From Phaeosaccion multiseriatum (Eukaryota > Protista > Ochrophyta, other classes): a stretch of DNA of 64,000 nt. The position numbers and the translations under genes were made by a program. The stretch is taken from positions 3,348,001 to 3,412,000 of the forward strand of contig OZ218959.1 of assembly GCA_965112735.1 (NCBI GenBank), in the 5' to 3' direction. Below, in pieces: positions 44,403-57,600 of this stretch. Under the pieces are notes generated by a model that searched no databases, was not told where the DNA came from, and saw only the letters and a list, made by a program, of their open reading frames with translations. The first letter of the stretch is position 1, and every line of letters starts with the position of its first letter.

Positions 44403-45560
44403 ATGGGTAGCACGACGCTGCCTGCGACGTCATGCGCGATGCGGGAGAGCATCGCGCAAAAGAGCGGGCCGAGGGCGTCAGTGTACAGTGTTCTGCGGAG
44501 CCAGGCGTATGCGACCGACATCCGCTTCTTTAAGTCCAGTACGAAGCAGCCGTACCGCACTGGGGATGTGTACAAAGGGAATTGGTTAAAGGACAAGAAG
44601 AGTGGGTACGGCACAATGACTTGGGCTGGGGGTAGCAAGTATGAGGGGGAATGGGGGGGGAATGCGAGGGAAGGCAAGGGGACGCTTTGGATTAAAGATA
44701 AGAAGCACAACAAGCTGCGGAAGCAGTATGCTGGGGATTGGGTCAAGGACAAGAGGGAGGGCATGGGGGTGCTGTACTACAAGGACGGGGGCCGGTACGA
44801 GGGTCAGTGGAAGGCCAACAAGAGGGACGGAAACGGCAAAATGGTGTTCGCCGACGGCTCCATTTACGAGGGCGCTTGGGTAGCAGGGGCACGGCACGGC
44901 ATTGGGGCCATGAAGATGCCCAATGGTGACATGCACGAGGGCCACTACATGCACGACAAGAAGGAAGGACCGGGCAGGTACCTCTACTTCTCCACTCGGA
45001 AGATCTACGAGGGAGAGTGGGTGGACGATGCTCCCCGCTGCGGAGAGTACAAGGACTTGCCGGTGGACCTTGTGTTGGAACACGTGCCGGACGAGAGCTT
45101 CACGCTCCCCTCCCTGCACATGGCGAGTGCCAAGGCCGTGCTGAGCTTCGCGGCGGCGAGTATTAGGAACCAGAGGGCCATCCGCCTGGGGCAGTCAGAG
45201 CGGGCCTTCTCCGAGGAGGAGTTTGCCATCCTCAAGCAAGGCTTTGACGCCTTCGATGAAGACAAGTGCGGTCTCGTGGCGTGCAGGGCTAAGGGGGGCA
45301 ACACACAAAGCCCTCTGCAGCAGGTGCTGCACAGCATTGGGCTCGAAATGGGGGCTCATGAGTACGAGGCGCTCATCCAAAACCTCGGTGCCGCAGACCA
45401 GAACACCTCCGTCACCTTCCCGGAGTTTATTGACATAATCGGGTGGATGACGAGCTATCAGGACCAGGAAGAAGAGCGAGCGGGAGGGGGGGAGAGGGGA
45501 AGTGAGCGGGAAGAAGAGCAAGAGGACCAATGGGAAGGAGCTGAGCATCAAAATGTATGA
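44403..45560 (+). CDS. MORN3: MORN repeat protein 3-like with C-terminal EF-hand-like pair
   Basis: About seven MORN repeats (YKGNWLKDKKSGYG, YEGEW, YAGDWVKDKREGMG...) and YEGEWVDDAPRCGEY. The tail reads FAILKQGFDAFDEDKCG...VTFPEFIDII. Confidence 0.85.
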   Translation: MGSTTLPATSCAMRESIAQKSGPRASVYSVLRSQAYATDIRFFKSSTKQPYRTGDVYKGNWLKDKKSGYGTMTWAGGSKYEGEWGGNAREGKGTLWIKDKKHNKLRKQYAGDWVKDKREGMGVLYYKDGGRYEGQWKANKRDGNGKMVFADGSIYEGAWVAGARHGIGAMKMPNGDMHEGHYMHDKKEGPGRYLYFSTRKIYEGEWVDDAPRCGEYKDLPVDLVLEHVPDESFTLPSLHMASAKAVLSFAAASIRNQRAIRLGQSERAFSEEEFAILKQGFDAFDEDKCGLVACRAKGGNTQSPLQQVLHSIGLEMGAHEYEALIQNLGAADQNTSVTFPEFIDIIGWMTSYQDQEEERAGGGERGSEREEEQEDQWEGAEHQNV

Positions 45561-45630: not shown

Positions 45631-48600
45631 TCAAAACCTGTCTTCCCCGAGCTCCACGTCTTGTGGCACTTGGGACAACTCGTAAAAGGCGTGCTCGACG
45701 GGCCCGTTGTACACCCTCACCACCCGCAGCCCTACGGAGGACTCGGCTTCTGTCCCCAGCACACCACCGCCTTCTAATTGCAGAGGGGGCAGGGGCCCGC
45801 CCACGGAGCTGGTCACGACCTGCTGTACGTCAGGCCGATCCTCCACCATCCAGTCGTCGTCGCTCCCTGCTTCCTCCTCCTCTTCTTCCGCTGCCGCTTC
45901 CTCCTTCGTCTCCTCGTTAGCACCTTCCGCAGCAGCAGCCTTCGCTTTTTTACCCTGTGTGGGAACTCTCAGCTTACACACCCGCTCGCCCCCCGCCTCG
46001 AAGCGCCCCCAAACACCCTCCACCGTCTCCGTTTTTCTGATGTGCCCATACGCCGCCTTGGCCTTGAAGCTCCGCTCCACATTGCGGTGAAGGTGCCCTG
46101 CGAATATGAACTTAACCTTGTTCCTGGCAAAGGTGCTCAGCCACCGCAGGCGCGTCTCCTTCGGTATGGGACTAAACACCTCGTGCGGCTCCTCGGACAG
46201 ACTCTGCGGGGGCAATAATAAATACAGGAGGTGGGGGGGGGGCTGAATTAGGGACTCACACTCAGCAGTTCGCGAGCTTATTAGAAGTGACGAAGTATTC
46301 CTTTTGCCTCCTCCCCGTCCACTTCACCTGCAGAAAGAGCGGGTGGTGTCCAAACACAAAGATGTGGTGTGCGTTGAGCTGGGACACCCCCAGTTCGGCC
46401 TCCAGCCACACGTCCTGCAGCCTGGCTCGAGAGGACGAACTCAGCGGCGGGCACATCAGGCATGTGTTGATGACCACACAGCGCGCCCCGCCGAACCAGT
46501 AAGCATAGTAGTCCGCCCCAAAGTGCCGGAGATAGGGGGCCATGGCCACGTCTCCGGGGTCATCGCCGCCCTTCTCTTCCTGCTCCCCCTCAACCTCCTC
46601 TATTGCGGCTGGGGGCGCAATGTCGTGATTTCCTGGCACGTACATGACCTGCCGAGACAGGACCAGGAGCAGCGTCAGGCGCGTGTGTGTGTGAGAGAAA
46701 GAGATGTTGGCCTGGAGAGCAAACCAATCCACAACTCAAGCGGGTGGGGGAGGGGAAGGAGGGCACTTACAGGAATTGTTGCCGACACCTTGCCCATGAT
46801 CTTCAACACCTGCTGCACCTGCCCCTCGTAGGAGGCACTGCCTGGCACGCTCTGTGTCATGTCCCCAGACACCACCACGAACTTGGGCCTGAGAGTGTTG
46901 ACCCGCCCCACCGCGTCACGCAAGCGGTCGGCCTCCTGCGCCCAGTCCTCGCCACCCTGCGCCATGCCCACCTGGGGATCTCCGAGGTGCACGAAGAAGA
47001 AGGGGTGCTCCCACTGGCCGTTATTCTCCCACGTCAGGCCCAGGTAGTCCCGCAGGCACTCGTCCGCCCTTTGTGCCTTGGCCTCCGCCCCAGAGGAGTG
47101 GAAGAGGCGCTGCACCCCAGGCTCGGACAAATCCCCCTTCCTTGTCAAGTAGTGCCGCAGGGCGCACAGCTCCAGAGGGTAGCGTGCCTTGATACGGGAC
47201 ACGTCCACGTGACTGGGAAGCGGGGCGCGGACGATGTGTTGGGCAGTGGCCCACTGACTTATGTGCCGGCCTGTTGCTCGCAGGCAAAGCTCGTTCAGCC
47301 TGGGGATTCGAAGTGCACTCTTTGAGTATAACTCGTCCACACCCCCTTCGCCCAAGGCGTCCCAGTACCTGTGATGCGGGGGGGGGGTGGGATGAGTTGG
47401 AGGGAGCTTGTAGCATCAAAGCAAAAGAAACAAAGCACACAGGAAGGAGCTGATTTCATTTCATCGGCTTCTTCGTACCGATGGGCCTTGAGCGCCTGGT
47501 ACCCACCCCGGCCCTGACTGCCCAGCCTACTCTGCGGCTCGTACTGCAGCAGCTCCTTGATCAGAGAGACCAAGTCCTCCCCCATGTGCGGCGGGAAGCG
47601 CAAGAGGCCCTCCTTGATCCGCAAGAAGCACAGGTAGGGGCTTGGCGCGTGGAACGGGGTGTGGCCGCTGCTCAAGTGGAATAAACAACACCCCAGCGCC
47701 TGTCCCCCGATAAGACAGACAGACAGACAGACATACATACATACATACAGACAGACAGACAGACAGACAGACAGGCAGACAGACAGACAGGCAGACAGAC
47801 AGGCAGACAGACAGGCAGACAGAGACAGGTTTGGTTTTGGCCAGATACAATGTGGAGTTCGCGTGGCCGCGATGGCGTCACACCTATCCCCCCCCCCCCC
47901 AATACTCACCCACAGGTCTGCCTCTGTCCCCTGCGTCTCACTCTTGACGGCCTGCGGGGACATGTACTGAGCAGTGCCCACAAACTCCGGCCCGTTGAGG
48001 TCGGTGTTGGTCAGATCCTTGGCGGTCCCAAAGTCAATGAGCTGAAGGGACGGACGGACGGACGGACGGAGGGAGGAAGGGCAGAGGAGGACCGTAAGAA
48101 GCAGCCTCGCTACGACCTGGGCTGATGAAAGTAGCCTCACCACCCCCATTAGGTGGGGTGAGACCCCGACGCACCTTGATGTGTCCGTTGCCCATAATCA
48201 TGATGTTCTCGGGCTTTACATCTCTGTGCACCATCTTTTTAGAGTGCATCCACTCCAGAGCAGCCACCAGCTCCCCCATCCAGAAGCGCGCCAAGGATGG
48301 CTCCACCCCGACTGCCTTCCCTCTGTCCATGGTGCGCTGCCAGACCTCCCCTCCCTCGCATAGCTCCAGCAAGTAGTACAAGCTGCCATAGTCCTGTGAG
48401 CGAACGATTGTTCAGCGCGTGGAGCGGCAGCACCCTGGCCCATTTAGTGAGTTGGTCCTTCATTGTGGTTGGAGGAGGGTTCTCAGTTGGTCTTTCCCTC
48501 CGGTCCTGCCTGCTTCTCTGCGAACTCTGATGGTGGGATGGACGACGCATCTACAGCTGCCCTTTGGCTGGACGGTCTGCCTGGTGGGGGCAGCATAGGG

Positions 48601-49154
48601 TTCGGGCGGAGTACCGGCTGCCTGCATATGTGATTCGCTGCCAAGGGCGAAAAGGCACCACCCTCTACTCCTCCCACACCCACAACCCTCACCGAGCCAA
48701 ACGACTCACACCCCACACTCCAGACCATCACGACGTATATACTCAACGATGACGGCCCCCATTGCTTTGGCGTTCACCTGAAAGGTTGCAAGCATCTCAA
48801 TGATACCCGGATGCCCGTGAAGGTGCGTCAAGGCCCTCTTCTCCATGTAGATTTCATTATATATATTCGCATGGCGCCGCTTCATCCTGTTGGCCTCGCT
48901 CTTGTCAATCACCTTGGGGTTGCACACGATAATAGAGGAATTGAGGGAGATGCTGGCGCGAGTTGATGACAGCAACAGCCGCTCACCTTGAGAGCCAGGA
49001 TCTGGCCCGTGAGTTTCCTCTTGACCTTCATAATGGTGCTGAAATTGCCTTGGCCTAGCTCCTGCAGCACCTCAAAGTCCTTTATGCTCGGCTTGCCCAG
49101 CTTCATGCTGTCCTCCCCCTCATCCCCCTTCTCTGGCTCATCTGCTCCAGACAT
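45631..49154 (-). CDS. PDK1-like AGC Ser/Thr kinase fused to a CPPED1-like calcineurin-type metallophosphoesterase
   Basis: Kinase motifs LGQGNFS, ALK, HRDVKPEN, IDFGTAK, FVGTAQYMSPQ and DLWALGC. The in-frame splice (intron 47479-47369) leads into GDPQVG, SGDMT, PGNHD, FGHHPLF and FAGHLHRN. Confidence 0.88.
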
Positions 49155-49334: not shown

Positions 49335-51521
49335 ATGGCGTGGAGGCGCGATGCGTGGAACGGATCGTCTTTCCCGCCGAGAAGCTCTCCGTCTGGTAGG
49401 TCTCGAGTGCGTAGTGAGACCTTGTTCTCGTTCTTGCTTCCCTTCTCGTCCTCCCTCTCTCGTCCTCCCTCTCTTCTGCCCTCTCTCCCTCTGTTGCTGC
49501 CCTCTGTCCTTCCTTGCTGTCCTCTTCCGTTCCGTTTTGCTTCTCGGGTCTCTTGTTACCACTTCCGTTGCCGTTCCTGTCCTGTCGTCCTCTAATACTA
49601 CTTCGAACGCTTCTGGTCACCATAACAGCCCCCTCTCGTATTGTCCTTTGCTCTCATCCCCTTGCTGCTCTCCTGTACTGCGCTCAGCGCTTTTGAATAA
49701 CTTGTCTACGAACAAGGATTCGCTGGTGAGTGGACGTCGCATCAGTCAGTCAGTTACGGGGAGGGGAATGAAAAGGGTGGAGTAAAAAATGCATAGGTGA
49801 ATGATAACCTCTCTGCTACTTATCCAACCCCCACCGCGCCCTTCTATCACCTTCTCAACGCAGTGCTTCGTAGGAAGTGGCAAGCTAAGAATGTTGAGTC
49901 GGAAGTCGGGGTCAATATCCACCCTGGGTTCAGGAGGGAGCAGTGGGGAGGTGGTGGAGGCCAAGTTTGTAGTGCTGAACGGAGAGGATGCCCTTGTCTG
50001 TTGTTTGCGCGGAGGTGAGTAACTGAGAACAAACTATATGTGATTCTGGTGTTTTGTCCTCCTCCTCCTCCTCCTCCTCCTCCTCCTCCTCCTCCTCCTC
50101 CTCCTCCTCCTCCTCCTCCTCCTCCTCCTCCTCCTCCTCCTCCTCCTCCTCCTCCTCCTCCTCCTCCTCCTCCTCCTCCTCCTCCTCCTCCTCCTCCTCC
50201 TCCTCCTCCTCCTCCTCCTCCTCCTCCTCCTCCTCCTCCTCCTCCTCCTCCTCCTCCTCCTCCTCCTCCTCCTCCTCCTTCTTGTTCTTGTTCTTGTTCT
50301 TGTTCTTCTTCTTGTTCTTGTTCTCCTCCCAATCTTGCTCTTCCTCCTCCTTCCCCTCCTCTTCCCCCTTCTCCTTCTCCCCCTCCTCCTTCTCTCTCTC
50401 CTCCCCTCCTCCTCCACCTCGTTATCCTCCTCCTCCTCCTCCTCCTCCATCTTCTTCTCCTCCTCCTTCTCAGGGGTTGAGATTTGGCGGGCCGATGGGT
50501 CGGTTCGCGTGTTCTATTGCGAGCTGGACAAGGTGCTGGAGTTTACAAATGATGTGGACAGTCAGGGCGCGTTTTGTCAAGGCCTGGCCACAGCAGCGGA
50601 TAGCTCCACACTCTTAGTAGGGGTGAGTGTGCGGTAGGCGCCCTCTCGATACGCGTACATGCTCAACCACACTTGCTGCTGCTGCTGGTGGTGCTGCTGC
50701 TCGCTCTCCCTTCACTGCCAGACGAGTGAGGGCGACATTCTCCAAATCCAAGCCGAGCTCGGCCTTACAGACCCCAAAGTGTCGAAAGTGTGGCTGGCGA
50801 GCTTGCTCAAGGGGCACGTGCGGGCCATAGTAGACATCGCAGTGGCGTCAGCCGGAGATGCAGCGGCATCCGCGGATGTGTGAGTGGCTGTGTTTTGGTC
50901 TTGTCGTTTTGGTTGAAGCATGCACGCAGGGAACACACACACATGCACATGTTATCTTAAGACCACAATCTCTCTCCGATCTCCGCGCCCTTACAGGGGG
51001 GGCAGCATCACGGTGTGGGACGCCCAGGCTCTGAAGAAGCTTTTCGTCCTGGACGGGGAGGGCTACCCCGTGACGAGCCTGGAGATGCAGGGGGACTCCA
51101 TCATTGCAGCCTTCTCCACGGGCCACATTCGTCTCTACCGCCTCAGCGTGAGGGAGCTCTCGTGCGAAATTGTCGCACACAGCAGGAGCATTACAGCCAC
51201 TTCGCTTCATCCCTCCTTGAACATTGTGAGTCGTAGGAGTGCTTGGGACGGCCGTATGGATCCCACACATCACTCATTTCTGGGCCCCTCTGTTTCCCGC
51301 CTCCCTCCCCCCTGCAGCTGGCAACTGTGAGCGAAGACACCTACGTCAGCGTTTGGTCCCTTCCTGAGTTCAATTCCTCGCACCCTCGGGCAGAGCTTCT
51401 GTTCCACGAGCAGCCGGGCGAGGGGGTACTTCTCACGGGCGTGTCGTTCCTGGACCCGGCAGGTACCCTAATGGCAGTGGCCTATGACACGGATCATCCC
51501 TTCTGCTGGCAGCGGTCATAA
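49335..51521 (+). CDS. WDR54: WD40-repeat protein 54-like
   Basis: Spliced N-terminus MAWRR...RSSPSALLNNLS resembles WDR54 (LRGSAAALCNNLS). Later motifs are GYPVTSL, FSTGHIRLY, EIVAHSRSIT and ATVSEDTYVSVW. Confidence 0.75.
50058..50279. repeat. Perfect (CCT)74 microsatellite in a WDR54 intron
   Basis: Uninterrupted CCT run followed by degenerate (TTCTTG)n and CT-rich sequence. Confidence 0.97.
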
Positions 51522-51675: not shown

Positions 51676-54600
51676 TCAAATGGCCTTCCTCCACACGTCC
51701 TCCTCCCCCTTCTTCCTGGCGGGGTCAATCCTATTTCGAAAGCCCAAAAGAGTGCAGGACAACGCCTGCGTGGCCCCCACCACCGGCCGCAGCACGGCAA
51801 GGGGTAGGGCCCTCACGACGGCAGTAGCGACGCCCGCCTCTTGATCCTCGTAGGGGATGGCAAGGATCGTCTGCGTCGCAAACTGAAACTCGCGCGAGAG
51901 ATTGTCGTACGCGGCTTCCACACCCTCCCGAATGCCGCTGGGCTGCAGGTCGTAATACTCCCCACTGCTGCTCGTGGGCTTTGCGTTGCCCTGCGGCGTA
52001 ATGACGTCGTCCAGCGTCCTCGCCAGACACCCCGCCATGCGCTGAGTCGTGTCCAAGCTCTCCACGGTGAGAACTCGGAGAAAAGCCGCAGAGCCCGCCC
52101 GCATGCCCCTTAGAATCCTCCCGTCCCGCTTGTACTGCTGAATGGGAAGCAGCACGAGATCCGCCACGCCCTTGCCCACACTCACGAGGGGCCGGATGGG
52201 CGTTGCTCCTGCCAAGAATTTGTGCAGCTGCTTGGACGAGATTGCGCCCACCCAGGCCTCCATTACGTCATTGCCCACGCTCACCCACCCCGAGTTGCCC
52301 GTGAGCAGCACCTGGCCCAGCGTGAGCTGCACTCCCTCGAGAGGGAAGAGGTTGAGCAGCTCCAGGAAGTTGCCTTCCTGCAGATCCTTGACCTTGATGT
52401 TGCGCGGCTGGTAATCGATCTTGACCTTACATGGGCCAAAGTCGCAGCTCTGGAAGAAGGCCCCCGCCTGCGCAGGAGCGGCAGGAGAAGCAAGACGGCC
52501 ATCGCCTTTCTGCTGCTGCTTTGTCCCTCCCGCTGCTGCTCCTGCTGATGCTGGGCTGAACCCGCGCAGAAAGTCGATGGTGTGTTGCCCAAACGTAATG
52601 TGGAGGGGGAGCACGCGAACCTTGAGCATGTACTCGTCGTTGAGGGGAGACGCCACATCCTGGGCAGTACTGCGGCTCGTCAGCTGCATGGTGAGCATGC
52701 TGTGGTGCGACTGCCGAGGGTGGGCCTTGTCAGAGCGCCAGTGCGTCACCACCTTGCGGGGGCGGGTGCTCGTAAGGGTGTCAAAGATGTGAAAGTCCTT
52801 GACAATGAAAGCCATGTTGGACAGCAAGTCGCCGTCGGACAGCTCGTGGAAGGAGTTCAAGCGCAGACTGGCGTGGCTCAGCACGAGCTCGAGCATGTGC
52901 AAAGTCCTCCTCCCAGATGCAGAGCCCGCCTTTGCCTGCGAACGACGCCGCCTTTGGGGTGCATATCGGGTGTAAGAGGCCTTCCCTCCGTCCAGGACGC
53001 CTCCTTCTCCTTGGTAGTTCTCCAAGAGAGCGTCCATCAAGGCGGACTTTCTGTCGCTCTTTGCTGTGTGAGCGGCTCGCACAGGCTCTAGCTGCTGCTG
53101 CTTCTGCTGCTGCTTCTGCTGCTGCTGATGCTGCTGATGCTGCTGATGCTGCTGCTGCTCTTCGTCCACCTCTCTCCAGTCCAGACCGCCGAAGAATCTC
53201 CAGCAAACGGTAACGTCGTGCACGATGAGCTGCAGAGTGGGTTGGGGCTTGCCATCCGACGCCCCAGCGGGATGTTGGGCGGCAGCAGCAGCAGGAGGCG
53301 AGTTCTCCAGAAGGTCAGGGACCGCTATATGGTGCGGATAGATCCGTAGCTCGTCAGAGGAGAACCATTGAGCCCCTTCGGCCTGATGATGAGGGACGGC
53401 AGCGTTATTCCCCGCTGCCTCTCCCATACTACTGCCGACGTCGTGTTGCTCCTCATAGTGGTCCTCGTTCTCGTCGTCCTCGTCCTCCTCCTCGCTGCTG
53501 CTACTGCTGCTGCTGCTGCTCTCGTCCTCCGAACTGCTCTCGTCTTCCGCGTGCTTCAAGCCCCCCTCCGCGGCGGAGGGGAAAATGCCATCTTCCAGCT
53601 CAATGTCAATAGCGCCGGGCAGGCGAAAGCCAAGAGACGCAGTCGAGCGTGAAGAAGACAGCCCTCCCAGGCCCTCGGTGCCACTTCCGAAACCCAAGAA
53701 ACCAAAGTCAGCGCCAAAACCAAAGTCACCACCGTGGCCTCGGCCGCCATCATCGTGCGTAGGCGACAGCCACCGTGCACCCCCTTCCTCCTCCTCCTCC
53801 TCCTCCTCCTCCCCCTCCTCAACCGCTGGTTGCGTGGACGTCTCATCACCTCCACTATCGCCCGCACCACCCTCCTCCCCCCCTTGGTAAAGCGGCTCCT
53901 GGACCGCCACGCAATAGTAGTCCTCAATGACCGGATAGTTCCCTTGGTTGGACTGAGACCGGCGCACAGTTCCCGTGGTGGCCTCCTCATTGTCTCCCGC
54001 ATCCTCCCGCCCGAGGGCAGGCACCACAGACGATGAGACTGTCCGAGGCGCCGCAAAAGAGTTCTCATCCACCTCGTCCAGAAGAGACGTTCTTCTTTTC
54101 CCCGCAACCGCAGCAGCAGTGGCAGCAGCAGAAGCCGCTCCGCCATCACGAGCCACCCTCAAAACCCCTGCAGCCCTCGCGGCGTTCACCTCTTGAAAGG
54201 TTGCCCACCAATCTGAGATTAAAGCAGCGCAAGACACGAGAGAGTCCCGGCAGATGTACACGTGCAGAGTACCCATCCAGACCTCCACAGTCATGTGCCC
54301 GTCGACAGGGGATGGGGCGTTCGTCTTGATCCGAATGAAAGAATCTAGGAAGTTCAGAGTGGCCACCTGCACAAAATCAACCCCCTCCAGGTACTCCTGC
54401 AGAGAGGCGCTGCGATTTCCCCCCAAGGAACCACCGCAGGAGCAGTCGCAAAGGACTGAGTCTTCGGCCGCGTAGTCTGTCAGGCGAACGGCAAGGTGAT
54501 ATGCAATGTCGCGCACCACGAGCTTGACGCACTGCACGGCCGCGCCCGGCACGAAATTGCACGACAGGCGAAAGATGCCCGCCGAGATGACTGCGCGAGC

Positions 54601-57600
54601 ACTGCTGGAGTAATCTACCACCCCGTTGGTGACGGTGACGAATAACTTTGTCAAGCAACCGGTGCTGCTAGGCTGCTGCTGCTGCTGCTGCTGAACCTCC
54701 TCCTGCTGCTCGCTGCCTTGCACATCCCCCGTAACGAAGCCCAAAAGGCGCATGAGCCAGTTTGAGCGCACGGTGTAGCGCAGAGACAGGTCGTGCAAAT
54801 TCGACACAATCGTCATTGTGCTTCCTCCCCCTTCGGCTGGTGCTGGCAAAGAGGTGACACACGCATCCAATGCCGTGTCCGACTGCGCCTTGACCCACTT
54901 GGTGCGATACAGAACGGGAATGAAAGTGGGAGAAGGGCCGCCATGTCGAGCCGAGACTTCTCCGTTGGCCTCATAGATGCAGAGATCCGTCGCTGAAAAG
55001 TGCTTCTTTGAGCTTTGGGCAGGAGGAGTGAAGTCTCCCAGCACTCCAGCTGCTCGAATCTTGAAGGAGTAAAAGCCTCCCTCAAGGCTGGGCGTGTGTC
55101 CGCTCGACTCGTGCAGCAGCACTGTAGCTTGGCGCACTCTCAGCTGGCTTCCACCCCCGCCTTCATCGCTACCCCTGCTGCTGCCGCTGCCGCTGCTACT
55201 GCCGCTGGTCTCAACCCCGCCCCCCGTGGACGTTACAATCTCCAGCAGAAGCTTGTATTCCACGAACGCCAAATCCAGCGTCACTGCTGGTAGAGTGCAC
55301 AGGGGCTTGGGGGCGCTTTCAGGCTGTCCCTCCAAGGGCGAAACCTTGTTCTCCTCCCAAAAGGCGTCTTCCCCCCACCCTTTTGGATCGGGCTGGGGCT
55401 CCCACGTGTGTAAGAAATCCTGGGCACCCGCTTGTCGAGGCGATTCCGCCCCTGCCTCCCTGTGGATACGAACCCCTCGCTCCAGCGAAATAGGGCCCTG
55501 TGAGTCGCTCGTCACATTAAGGAATGAGAGGCGGTGCTGCTGCGAGCATTGACCGTCGTCGGACAGGGCCGAGAGGACCAACACGGCCTCCAAAGTCCGC
55601 GCCTCTACACGCATCCCCGACGCCACGTCTGGAAGTCGCACCTCAGCAGTTAGTTGCTGGACGACAACTAAAAGCAGAGCCGCCGAGGAACACGAAGCGG
55701 GGGGGGGGAGGACGTTTTCCCACTTGCGTTGGAGGAGGCCGTCGTTACACGAGCGCAGCAGGTCACCAAAAACGGCCGAGTTGCCCATGGTCGCATTGTC
55801 CGCAGGGAGATACAAATCGAGGCGCGGCAAGACCAATTGAAGCGCCTTGCCGCCATTCGCCGCCGCGGTGGGACTACTGCTGCTGCTGCTGCTGCTGCTG
55901 GTGCTGGTGCTGCTGCCGTCTCGCCCATCCTCCATTTGGCCCGAAAGAGATGCTAAAAAGGAGCTTGCATGCCCCAGAGTCTCTGAGTCCAGCGTTACTT
56001 CCAGTGCCTGCTGGCAAGTGCAGCGCAATAGGTTGTCCTTTCCATCGTCCGAGAACAATATACAGCTCTGCGGGGACGAAACTACTGCGCTCGAGCTGGA
56101 TGCGGAGAGGGGAAAGTGCGCCACGCGCTGGGCTTGGCCTTTCCAAAAGTTGCTGAGGTGAGCCTTCCCAATCTCAGCATGGCGCTGCGCCCCCGTACCC
56201 CCAAGCTGCAGACGGAAGCAAGAGTGGCGAACCACGAGCCGAAAGTGGGCATCTTCCTCCCAGTTCTCCGATGCAGGTTGCTGCTGCGGCCCATGGAAGA
56301 GCACAGCCGTACACGCGTCCAACCGAATGCGAACCTCGACCGAGGTCGAGGCGGACTTGAGAGAGGAGGAGTCCAAAAACTCCTCGTCGTGGCAGTCGAA
56401 AAACTCGTCATCGCCTTCGAGGCCCATCGACTCCGCGAGCCGATGCCTCGCTTCCGCGTACTCTCGCAGCATGTCCTCCAGTCTCCGGAAATTCATCTCC
56501 TGCTGCTGCTCTCCTCGCACGCTGTCCTCACCCAAGAAGCCGTCAAGCACCAAGGAACTGCTCAGGAGAGTGCCCAGAGGATGATGATGAGGTGCCTGCT
56601 GCTGCTCCTGCCCCCCCCCGCCCCCCAAACTCTCTGCAAACAGCAGGATACGACAACACAAGTCTGGACACATAGTCACGTGCAAACTTTTTAGCGACGC
56701 ATCCATATCCAAAGCTGAATTGGCTGGCTTCCCTCGTCCCGGAGAGGACTTGATACAAACGCTTGCTCCCGTTGAGCTCGCCACCTCGCTGTCAACGCCC
56801 TTCTCGGCGTCCTCGTAGCGTACTTGCACGCCCCCCACAGCAACGCTCTGTGCACGGAACAAGAGCAGCCGCAATTCGATTGAGGCCACAGCGAAGAAAC
56901 GATGCGGGGTAGAGACAGTGATATAACATCAGGTGGGAAATCTTCTTGCTGAAAGAGGGTGAGACTGAAGGGCCTAAGTCCTCCTTTGGAATCCAAAATA
57001 GAACTCACCTTGATGACATCCTCGTCCCAAGCCGCAGCAGCGTCCAGCGGCGAGGGTACCGCGTCTGGGGTGTCATCCACATACCGCGCAGACGACGCAT
57101 AAACCACCAGGCTGGCGCTGCCTCCCCCCCCGACTCGCACACACACATCAGATACGGCCACCTTTATCTTGGACGAAATCTGCTTGATCCAGCTGGCCAC
57201 AAAGTCCAGGCCCTCCATCGATTCATCCTTACTATTTGATTCGGGAAAGGTGCTGTTGGGCGGAGGCGGGGTCCGCCTATGGGAATTTGAACCACTCCCG
57301 GCTGCACCAGCGGTAGCACACCCCCCTCCCAGAGCAGAAGCCTCCACATCCAACGAGAGCTTTTCCACCTCGAACGACAGACTCTCCGACAACAAATTGC
57401 TGTAGCAAATGTGGACCCTCAGCTTGCCCACGTGCGCTGCCTTCACGCGGAAAGGGGTGCCTTCCATATACGGCGCGAGCGAAGCAACATTGAGCTCCAA
57501 GTCCGAGAGCTCCACACTTCCAGCCCTGACTGACACGGACAGTTGCTAGGGGGGCACGAGGGGGCAGGGGAGGGCTGACTGGGGTAAGGAGACGGAGCGA

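Follow-up and report, generated by a model that had tools for sequence, protein, structure and literature searches.

A gene of the alga Phaeosaccion multiseriatum that runs from a PDK1-like protein kinase into a CPPED1-like metallophosphatase poses two questions: (i) whether both halves belong to one polypeptide and (ii) what a kinase would do with a phosphatase of its own. The gene lies on the minus strand at 49154-45631 of a 64,000-nucleotide stretch of contig OZ218959.1 (the window, whose coordinates are used throughout), for which an original prediction, made from the letters alone, had proposed such a fusion. We find that the locus is one gene predicted to encode one protein of 788 amino acids (aa), a join that rests on comparison with relatives. 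The protein belongs to a family spread across the stramenopiles, in most members of which the phosphatase half has lost its metal ligands; in the window protein this half retains every motif of the catalytic site.

Read directly from the sequence, the gene has eight exons and seven introns. The introns are 74 to 384 nucleotides (nt) long, and all seven start with GT and end with AG. The spliced coding sequence of 2367 nt translates into 788 aa followed by TGA, and another TGA stands in frame 12 codons 5' of the start ATG. The parts of the gene are listed here from 5' to 3'.

49154-48987, minus strand: exon 1, aa 1-56, with the start ATG (49154-49152), an acidic N-terminus, the Gly-rich loop GQGNFS and the beta3 lysine, Lys56 (48989-48987).

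48912-48778, minus strand: exon 2, aa 57-101, with the alphaB-alphaC region, the family signature RRHANIYNEIYMEKR and TFQ at its end.

48393-48175, minus strand: exon 3, aa 102-174, with the hinge, alphaD-alphaE and the catalytic loop HRDVKPEN, in which Asp159 is encoded at 48222-48220.

48041-47910, minus strand: exon 4, aa 175-218, with DFG (48035-48027), the activation loop LNGPEFVGT, Glu193 (47987-47985) and SPQ (47960-47952).

47699-47479, minus strand: exon 5, aa 219-292 (only the first two bases of the last codon), with the kinase C-lobe as far as ...GGYQALKAH-R.

47478-47369, minus strand: intron 5, 110 nt, GTACGA...CACAG, the junction at which the kinase meets the remainder of the protein.

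47368-46771, minus strand: exon 6, with a connector followed by the start of the metallophosphatase core.

47367-47014, minus strand: opening part of exon 6, aa 293-410, which is the connector, including YWDAL (where the kinase C-terminal motif ends) and the IPRLNELCLRATG helices.

47013-46771, minus strand: rest of exon 6, aa 411-491, with phosphatase motif I, GDPQ (46983-46972), and motif II, SGD (46869-46861).

46648-46328, minus strand: exon 7, aa 492-598, with motif III, GNHD (46633-46622), an acidic insert of 17 aa and motif IV, GHHP (46351-46340).

46203-45631, minus strand: exon 8, aa 599-788 and TGA (45633-45631), with motif V, GHLH (46098-46087), an acidic low-complexity insert of about 80 aa and the last strands, VVTSS...GLRVVRVY...EHAFYEL.

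For protein structure, and for several of the family assignments below, orthologs serve as stand-ins whose kinase domains are 50-67% identical to that of the window protein. Searches by tblastn with five relatives recovered each exon boundary to within a few bases. The high-scoring segment for exon 1 ends at 48984-48987, those for exon 2 cover 48915-48778, with up to 87% identity to Tribonema minus P0225, and those for exon 7 cover 46648-46328. Upstream of the gene, tblastn at E = 50 found no TPR-like exons, and the open reading frames (ORFs) there are other genes or simple repeats.

The first question turns on intron 5. An in-frame intron of 111 nt at 47479-47369 had been predicted to join the halves. 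The predicted junction, ...ALKAH-R-YWDALGEGG, stands, but those boundaries were wrong because the frame would break; the intron is the 110 nt at 47478-47369, and an Arg codon is split CG|G across it. A conserved PDK1-type C-terminal motif (GY.ALKAH|RYW) straddles the intron, and at the same point relatives are uninterrupted, with GYPALKAHPYF or GYAGLKAHPFF (ALKAHPYF in Tribonema, LKAHPFF in Chrysoparadoxa). In the window gene the first Met in frame beyond the kinase is aa 427, which lies 3' of phosphatase motif I, and no in-frame ATG falls between the kinase and that motif; a phosphatase gene of its own would therefore lack a start.

The relatives point the same way. Among fetched proteins that match the kinase and also the connector or phosphatase part, at least 131 are collinear with the window protein over its whole length. 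Two of them, P0015 (793 aa) and P0017 (919 aa), are each encoded on a genomic contig by an ORF without interruption, so their fusion is free of any splicing prediction. Complete transcript ORFs with the fusion are available for Tribonema gayanum (P0002) and as several MMETSP entries, and Pfam detects Pkinase and Metallophos together in P0002, P0003, P0006, P0007, P0015 and P0046. The collinear relatives, the intron-less ORFs, the transcripts and the missing phosphatase start codon all support the single polypeptide that had been proposed. An artefact of assembly or gene modeling was also considered as the source of the fusion, and is ruled out by the intron-less ORFs and transcripts of the relatives.

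By its nearest relatives, in sequence and in modeled fold, the kinase half is a PDK1-type AGC kinase. Pfam identifies Pkinase on window exons 1, 3, 4 and 5, covering aa 27-56 on exon 1 and with values of 2.3e-15 on exon 3 and 3.2e-7 on exon 4. The catalytic residues are all present: GQGNFS, K56, E79 (in YMEKR), HRDVKPEN and DFG. Searches of the PDB with single window exons, which are too short to discriminate, returned PKG, PKA and MST3 as top matches. For close orthologs with the same fusion, PDK1 is the best solved relative by both sequence and fold. The kinase domain of Tribonema minus P0225, 67% identical to that of the window protein, scores 188 bits with human PDK1, 167 with yeast PKA and at most 158 with RSK, AKT and PKA; that of Chrysoparadoxa (P0004), 60% identical, scores 156 bits with PDK1 versus 143 for the next match. 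The margins in favor of PDK1 are thus about 21 bits for P0225 and about 13 bits for P0004. In a Foldseek search with the AlphaFold model of P0015, ranks 1-40 were all human PDK1, at 35-36% identity and with template modeling (TM) scores by target of 0.81-0.92. The alignment of the C-lobe to PDK1 "...EGYGPLKAHPFF" is seen through the Tribonema ortholog.

The regulatory features of this kinase are distinctive. No PH family was found in Pfam scans of the window exons and of 10 relatives, nor in the Pfam lists of 120 relatives, in agreement with the earlier statement that the PH domain is absent. The window protein also has no F-x-x-F/Y hydrophobic motif after the kinase, as in PDK1. Glu193 occupies the position of the PDK1 activation-loop phosphosite, Ser241. 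When the Tribonema ortholog is aligned to PDK1, a Glu stands opposite the Ser of ...ANSFVGTAQY, and the best PDB match of exon 4 is an engineered phosphomimetic form of MST3 with RNEFVGT (RNTFVGT in the wild type). The sequence GPEFVGT, with Glu at the phosphosite, occurs in 120 of the 132 family members; P0015 and P0241 have Asn at this site and CPR at the APE position. HRD is kept in 131 of 132 members and DFG in 120 of 132, the others having DYG or DLG. The strongest non-catalytic signature is the near-invariant RRH.N..NEI.ME[KR]R at window aa 67-81 (48882-48838). It lies in the alphaB-alphaC region, which has an insertion of five residues relative to PDK1. We take this region to be the site of the substrate-docking PIF pocket in PDK1.

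The APE motif reads SPQ (window aa 202-204), a change that had been read as a possible sign of reduced or unusually regulated kinase activity. The substitution is present, and eight family members share it, with SPE or APE in about 93 members. As a sign of decay it does not hold up: the catalytic residues of the kinase are intact, and SPQ or TPQ is common to the clade whose phosphatase looks active.

The phosphatase half is complete. As predicted, all five phosphoesterase motifs are present in the window protein: GDPQ at aa 421-424, SGD at 459-461, GNHD at 497-500, GHHP at 591-594 and GHLH at 634-637. They include D422, G460-D461 and H592/H593. The signature of CPPED1 and the class III phosphodiesterases is D-[x]n-GD-[x]n-GNH[E/D]-[x]n-H-[x]n-GHxH (PMC8366450). 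It too is complete in the window protein.

Sequence, language-model features and predicted fold agree on the CPPED1 likeness proposed for this domain. By blastp, window aa 401-788 match the bacterial protein P0166, named CPPED1 by NCBI, at 31% identity over the whole catalytic core (E = 5e-46). On the far side of the acidic insert of about 80 aa, the last strands align as a second segment (E = 2e-8), and conserved versions of these C-terminal strands are present in Tribonema, Ectocarpus and P0003. The 17-aa acidic insert after GNHD has no counterpart in relatives. In ESM Atlas, the features of the Tribonema ortholog domain have chordate CPPED1 as their top match (0.96, 190 of 256 features). 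A separate AlphaFold model of the P0015 connector and phosphatase has a mean predicted local distance difference test (pLDDT) of 88.7. Its best match by fold is the chordate CPPED1 cluster (TM score 0.76 by target and root-mean-square deviation 2.1 A over 254 residues), with a bacterial "putative CPPED1" cluster ranked beside it. Solved structures are more distant and belong to generic metallophosphoesterases: weak matches by fold are purple acid phosphatases/phytases, GpdQ, SMPDL3 and Rv0805, and sequence profiles recover Rv0805, Icc and purple acid phosphatase. Searches of the PDB by sequence with the separate phosphatase pieces of the window gave no matches, and NCBIfam gave only sub-threshold matches to assorted phosphoesterases. 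Pfam detects Metallophos in the full-length relatives but not in the window exons taken one at a time, since each of exons 6-8 holds only part of the domain.

Between the two enzymes, a linker of roughly 110 aa had been proposed. The region exists, but it is not a mere linker: it is a conserved folded region that consists in part of CPPED1-type N-terminal helices. It is conserved through the family, and the P0015 connector has a pLDDT above 90 in the AlphaFold model; the mapping of P0015 residues to the window protein is approximate here. The stretch RHYLTRKGDL...RLFHSS...DYLG...GQW, which starts near aa 350, corresponds to N-terminal helices in models of CPPED1. In the P0015 model the structural match to the CPPED1 cluster begins about 65 residues ahead of the first strand, which is why roughly the second half of the linker is equated with these helices. 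The first half (around IPRLNELCLRATG) appears from the model to be a family-specific, well-folded helical piece. No connector family was found in Pfam even at E = 10, and no convincing cluster in the Atlas. The full-length AlphaFold model of P0015 (pLDDT 88, predicted TM score, pTM, 0.89) suggests that the entire protein forms one rigid multi-domain body.

The architecture is not confined to this alga. An exhaustive phmmer search with exon 6 recovered many proteins of 600-920 aa in which the match lies at positions 300-640, and further relatives were gathered by word-index searches with a connector-plus-phosphatase profile and with the kinase domain. The following members were identified.

Brown algae: Ectocarpus, Pylaiella and Laminaria.

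Tribonema minus: a protein of 1008 aa with TPR, Pkinase and Metallophos.

Further ochrophytes: Heterosigma, Chrysoparadoxa and Phaeothamnion.

Nannochloropsis: a protein publicly labeled "agc pdk1 protein kinase".

Pelagophytes: Aureococcus (labeled "3-phosphoinositide-dependent protein kinase") and Chrysophaeum.

Diatoms: about ten genera.

Oomycetes: Aphanomyces invadans (labeled "AGC/PDK1 protein kinase"), A. stellatus and Globisporangium.

Intron-less genes on metagenomic contigs: L001 2001-4760 and L002 905-3286.

Other public labels are "kinase-like domain-containing protein" and, for fragments at JGI, "cAMP phosphodiesterase CpdA". Many relatives have N-terminal TPR repeats, which the window gene lacks.

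In a maximum-likelihood tree of 32 members, the diatoms, pelagophytes, oomycetes, a raphidophyte group and an intron-less group form separate, fully supported clades. The intron-less clade (P0015, P0017, P0013 and P0007) comes from compact metagenomic contigs with short intergenic spacers. The window protein falls with Ectocarpus, Tribonema, Chrysoparadoxa and P0227 in a clade with 100/100 support, within which its best identity is 52%, to Tribonema minus. By its place in the tree, the window gene is the PX-clade (brown-alga/Tribonema) ortholog of a stramenopile-wide family. Because the tree follows organismal clades from oomycetes to ochrophytes, the fusion is vertically inherited and at least as old as the oomycete/ochrophyte split.

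Conservation of the phosphatase motifs is very uneven across the family. The window protein keeps all five intact, as do both Tribonema species, Heterosigma, P0003, P0227 and P0015/P0241 and, judged by eye, Ectocarpus and Pylaiella. They are degenerate in Chrysoparadoxa and in all diatom, pelagophyte and oomycete members examined. In total, 86 of the 132 members retain none of the motifs and 105 retain at most one. At least three clades have members with all five (PX, raphidophyte and the intron-less P0015 clade), and overall identity between them is 30-50%. Given that most family members are without metal ligands, the conserved role of the domain cannot be catalysis. The ancestral, conserved contribution must then, from the pattern of motif loss, be structural or regulatory, with catalysis an extra kept by some lineages, including that of the window gene. 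The kinase varies along with the phosphatase: the APE Glu is absent from 10 of the 11 members with at least four intact motifs, and it is kept in 91 of the 105 with at most one. Loss of this Glu tracks an intact phosphatase, but only about three independent clades underlie the pattern, so shared ancestry may be the cause.

Comparison with known proteins shows which parts of this architecture are familiar. Like PDK1, the kinase has the TFQD motif, an FVGTAQY.SP activation segment, the GY..LKAHP.F C-terminal motif and no hydrophobic-motif tail. Unlike PDK1, it lacks a PH domain, has Glu for the autophosphorylated Ser, the five-residue alphaB-alphaC insertion and SPQ, and is followed by a C-terminal metallophosphatase; many family members add N-terminal TPR repeats, another difference from PDK1. 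The phosphatase half resembles CPPED1 in being collinear over the whole domain, including the last strands, and in its full D..GD..GNHD..H..GHxH; like that of the CPPED1-named P0166, its motif I has the form D-x-Q and not D-x-H. CPPED1 itself stands alone, as a protein of about 300 aa, whereas the domain of the window protein sits behind a kinase and a connector and contains two acidic inserts (17 and about 80 aa). A further difference from CPPED1 is that most relatives in the family have lost the catalytic residues.

Proteins that combine a kinase with a phosphatase are already known. In oomycetes and plants, PP2C and cyclic nucleotide-binding domains occur with an inactive kinase, and these fusions share with the window protein the placement of kinase and phosphatase domains on one chain. 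In PP2C and PhoD fusions the kinase is often inactive, whereas the window protein combines a calcineurin-like metallophosphoesterase with a kinase whose catalytic residues are complete. A published kinome of Phytophthora infestans includes PP2C and PhoD among its kinase accessory domains; Metallophos is missing from that list, as is a PDK1 subfamily from the kinome (PMC3019232). We found no description of a PDK1 or other AGC kinase fused to a metallophosphoesterase in the full-text literature, in which coverage of subscription journals is incomplete. The PDK1-CPPED1 family is visible in databases yet uncharacterized. Any novelty implied by the prediction shrinks accordingly: the architecture occurs across stramenopiles, including oomycetes and many algae, but no characterization of it was found.

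Addressing the second question, we slightly favor a bifunctional protein, in which a PDK1-type kinase and a CPPED1-type phosphatase are both competent and act on the same substrates or complex. Glu193 would keep the kinase permanently "primed". With Glu at the phosphosite, the kinase would need no activation-loop phosphorylation and would be immune to its own phosphatase; lacking a PH domain, it would not be recruited by phosphoinositides. It would phosphorylate substrates of the AGC-kinase type, and the tethered CPPED1-like domain would take phosphate off these substrates, or off the complex they belong to, a hydrophobic motif being one example. Animal CPPED1 is reported to remove the hydrophobic-motif phosphate of AKT (Ser473). 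Rather than simply switching a pathway on, such a protein might set, limit or reset a level of phosphorylation. The self-contained AGC-pathway switch that the original prediction had suggested is likewise a hypothesis. In lineages without metal ligands, the domain probably stays as a binding or regulatory module.

Several points weigh against a bifunctional protein. The metal ligands are gone in most members of the family, and the catalytic competence of both halves in the window protein is judged from intact residues. Gln in place of the APE Glu may weaken the kinase. Its likeness to PDK1 is at the level of best matches, and it may be a stramenopile paralog of PDK1. The structural evidence comes from models of P0015, a relative with 50% identity, rather than from the window protein itself. 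Four public runs for the organism, all from one sample, contain no spliced joints at the locus, only unspliced genomic contigs. The status of CPPED1 as a protein phosphatase is debated, and by sequence it is a class III phosphodiesterase (PMC8366450).

Three other explanations were weighed. The CPPED1-like domain could be mainly a non-catalytic regulatory or docking module, a pseudo-enzyme that holds the kinase in a given state or binds phosphorylated partners, its intact motifs in the window protein being an ancestral leftover of minor functional importance. We regard this as possible, though less likely than the bifunctional protein. The domain and connector are kept, and recognizably homologous, in diatoms, pelagophytes and oomycetes in spite of motif loss that leaves 86 of the 132 members with none, and the high pTM of the full-length P0015 model suggests tight packing of the domains. 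However, retention of five motifs in at least three clades as divergent as these (30-50% identity) points to purifying selection on catalysis there. A domain active on a small molecule is a less probable option: it would work as a class III phosphodiesterase does, on a cyclic nucleotide or some other phosphodiester, and would couple the kinase to second-messenger breakdown. The class III signature is found in CPPED1, among bacterial proteins the nearest to CPPED1 are of the CpdA type (PMC8366450), the solved relatives are Rv0805, Icc, purple acid phosphatase, GpdQ and SMPDL3, and JGI names the fragments CpdA. But the closest named relatives by sequence, features and fold are CPPED1 proteins, for which the reported substrates are the proteins AKT1 and PAK4, and a protein substrate is the simpler fit for a domain tethered to a protein kinase, though neither counterpoint is decisive.

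The last alternative, which we consider very improbable, is that the locus holds two neighboring genes or obligatory isoforms, with the kinase ending in a retained intron 5 and the phosphatase made separately. It would be compatible with the four public runs, which are DNA and unspliced. If intron 5 is retained the frame continues for 62 codons to a stop at 47295, and a kinase-only isoform is conceivable. Such a phosphatase would nevertheless have no in-frame ATG ahead of motif I, and the C-terminal kinase motif and connector are continuous in all relatives, including those represented by intron-less genomic ORFs and by transcripts. A more ambitious version of the bifunctional protein holds that a fusion from the oomycete/ochrophyte ancestor is the stramenopile PDK1 ortholog, with a tethered eraser in place of the PH domain and a loop fixed "on" by Glu; the protein would act as a set-point controller on shared AGC substrates and would have shifted toward a pseudo-phosphatase through repeated loss of catalysis. 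As a whole, this combination is tentative and rather unlikely to be right in every part.

The surroundings of the gene contain other features. At 44403-45560, on the plus strand and convergent with the kinase-phosphatase gene, lies a single-ORF gene whose product is a MORN-repeat protein of 385 aa (Pfam MORN 7.6e-32). The 3' untranslated regions of the two genes must overlap or be very short, since their stop codons are only 70 bp apart. On the minus strand at 51676-56889 is an uninterrupted ORF of 1737 aa with a match to the C-terminal two thirds of the autophagy protein ATG2 (Pfam ATG2_CAD 5.1e-94). A three-base simple repeat of about 290 bp (50040-50330) separates the 5' end of the kinase-phosphatase gene from the genes that come next; according to strand and frame it reads as poly-Gly, poly-Pro, poly-Ser or poly-Arg. 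Two introns of the gene contain simple repeats as well: intron 4 a (CTGT)n microsatellite at 47707-47830 and intron 3 a (CCGT)n run at 48045-48080. Public contigs from the four DNA runs are interrupted at both tracts. Word depths at 48046-48080 exceed 1000, and this stretch is therefore a high-copy genomic repeat.

PDK1 is the master activator of AGC kinases, and to our knowledge its control in organisms other than animals, fungi and plants is hardly understood. The stramenopiles include diatoms, kelps and oomycete crop pathogens, among others. The family-wide presence of a CPPED1-type domain in place of a PH domain, and of Glu in place of the phosphoserine, points to a different control logic in these organisms. 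An old covalent fusion of PDK1 and CPPED1 would also be independent evolutionary evidence for the contested link between CPPED1 and PI3K-AKT signaling, a link that can now be tested. If the more ambitious version is right, this Rosetta-stone fusion would support the stand-alone CPPED1 of animals as a genuine AGC-pathway phosphatase acting with PDK1. Within the family, phosphatase domains range from active-looking to dead, a natural series that is useful for studying the origins of pseudo-enzymes.

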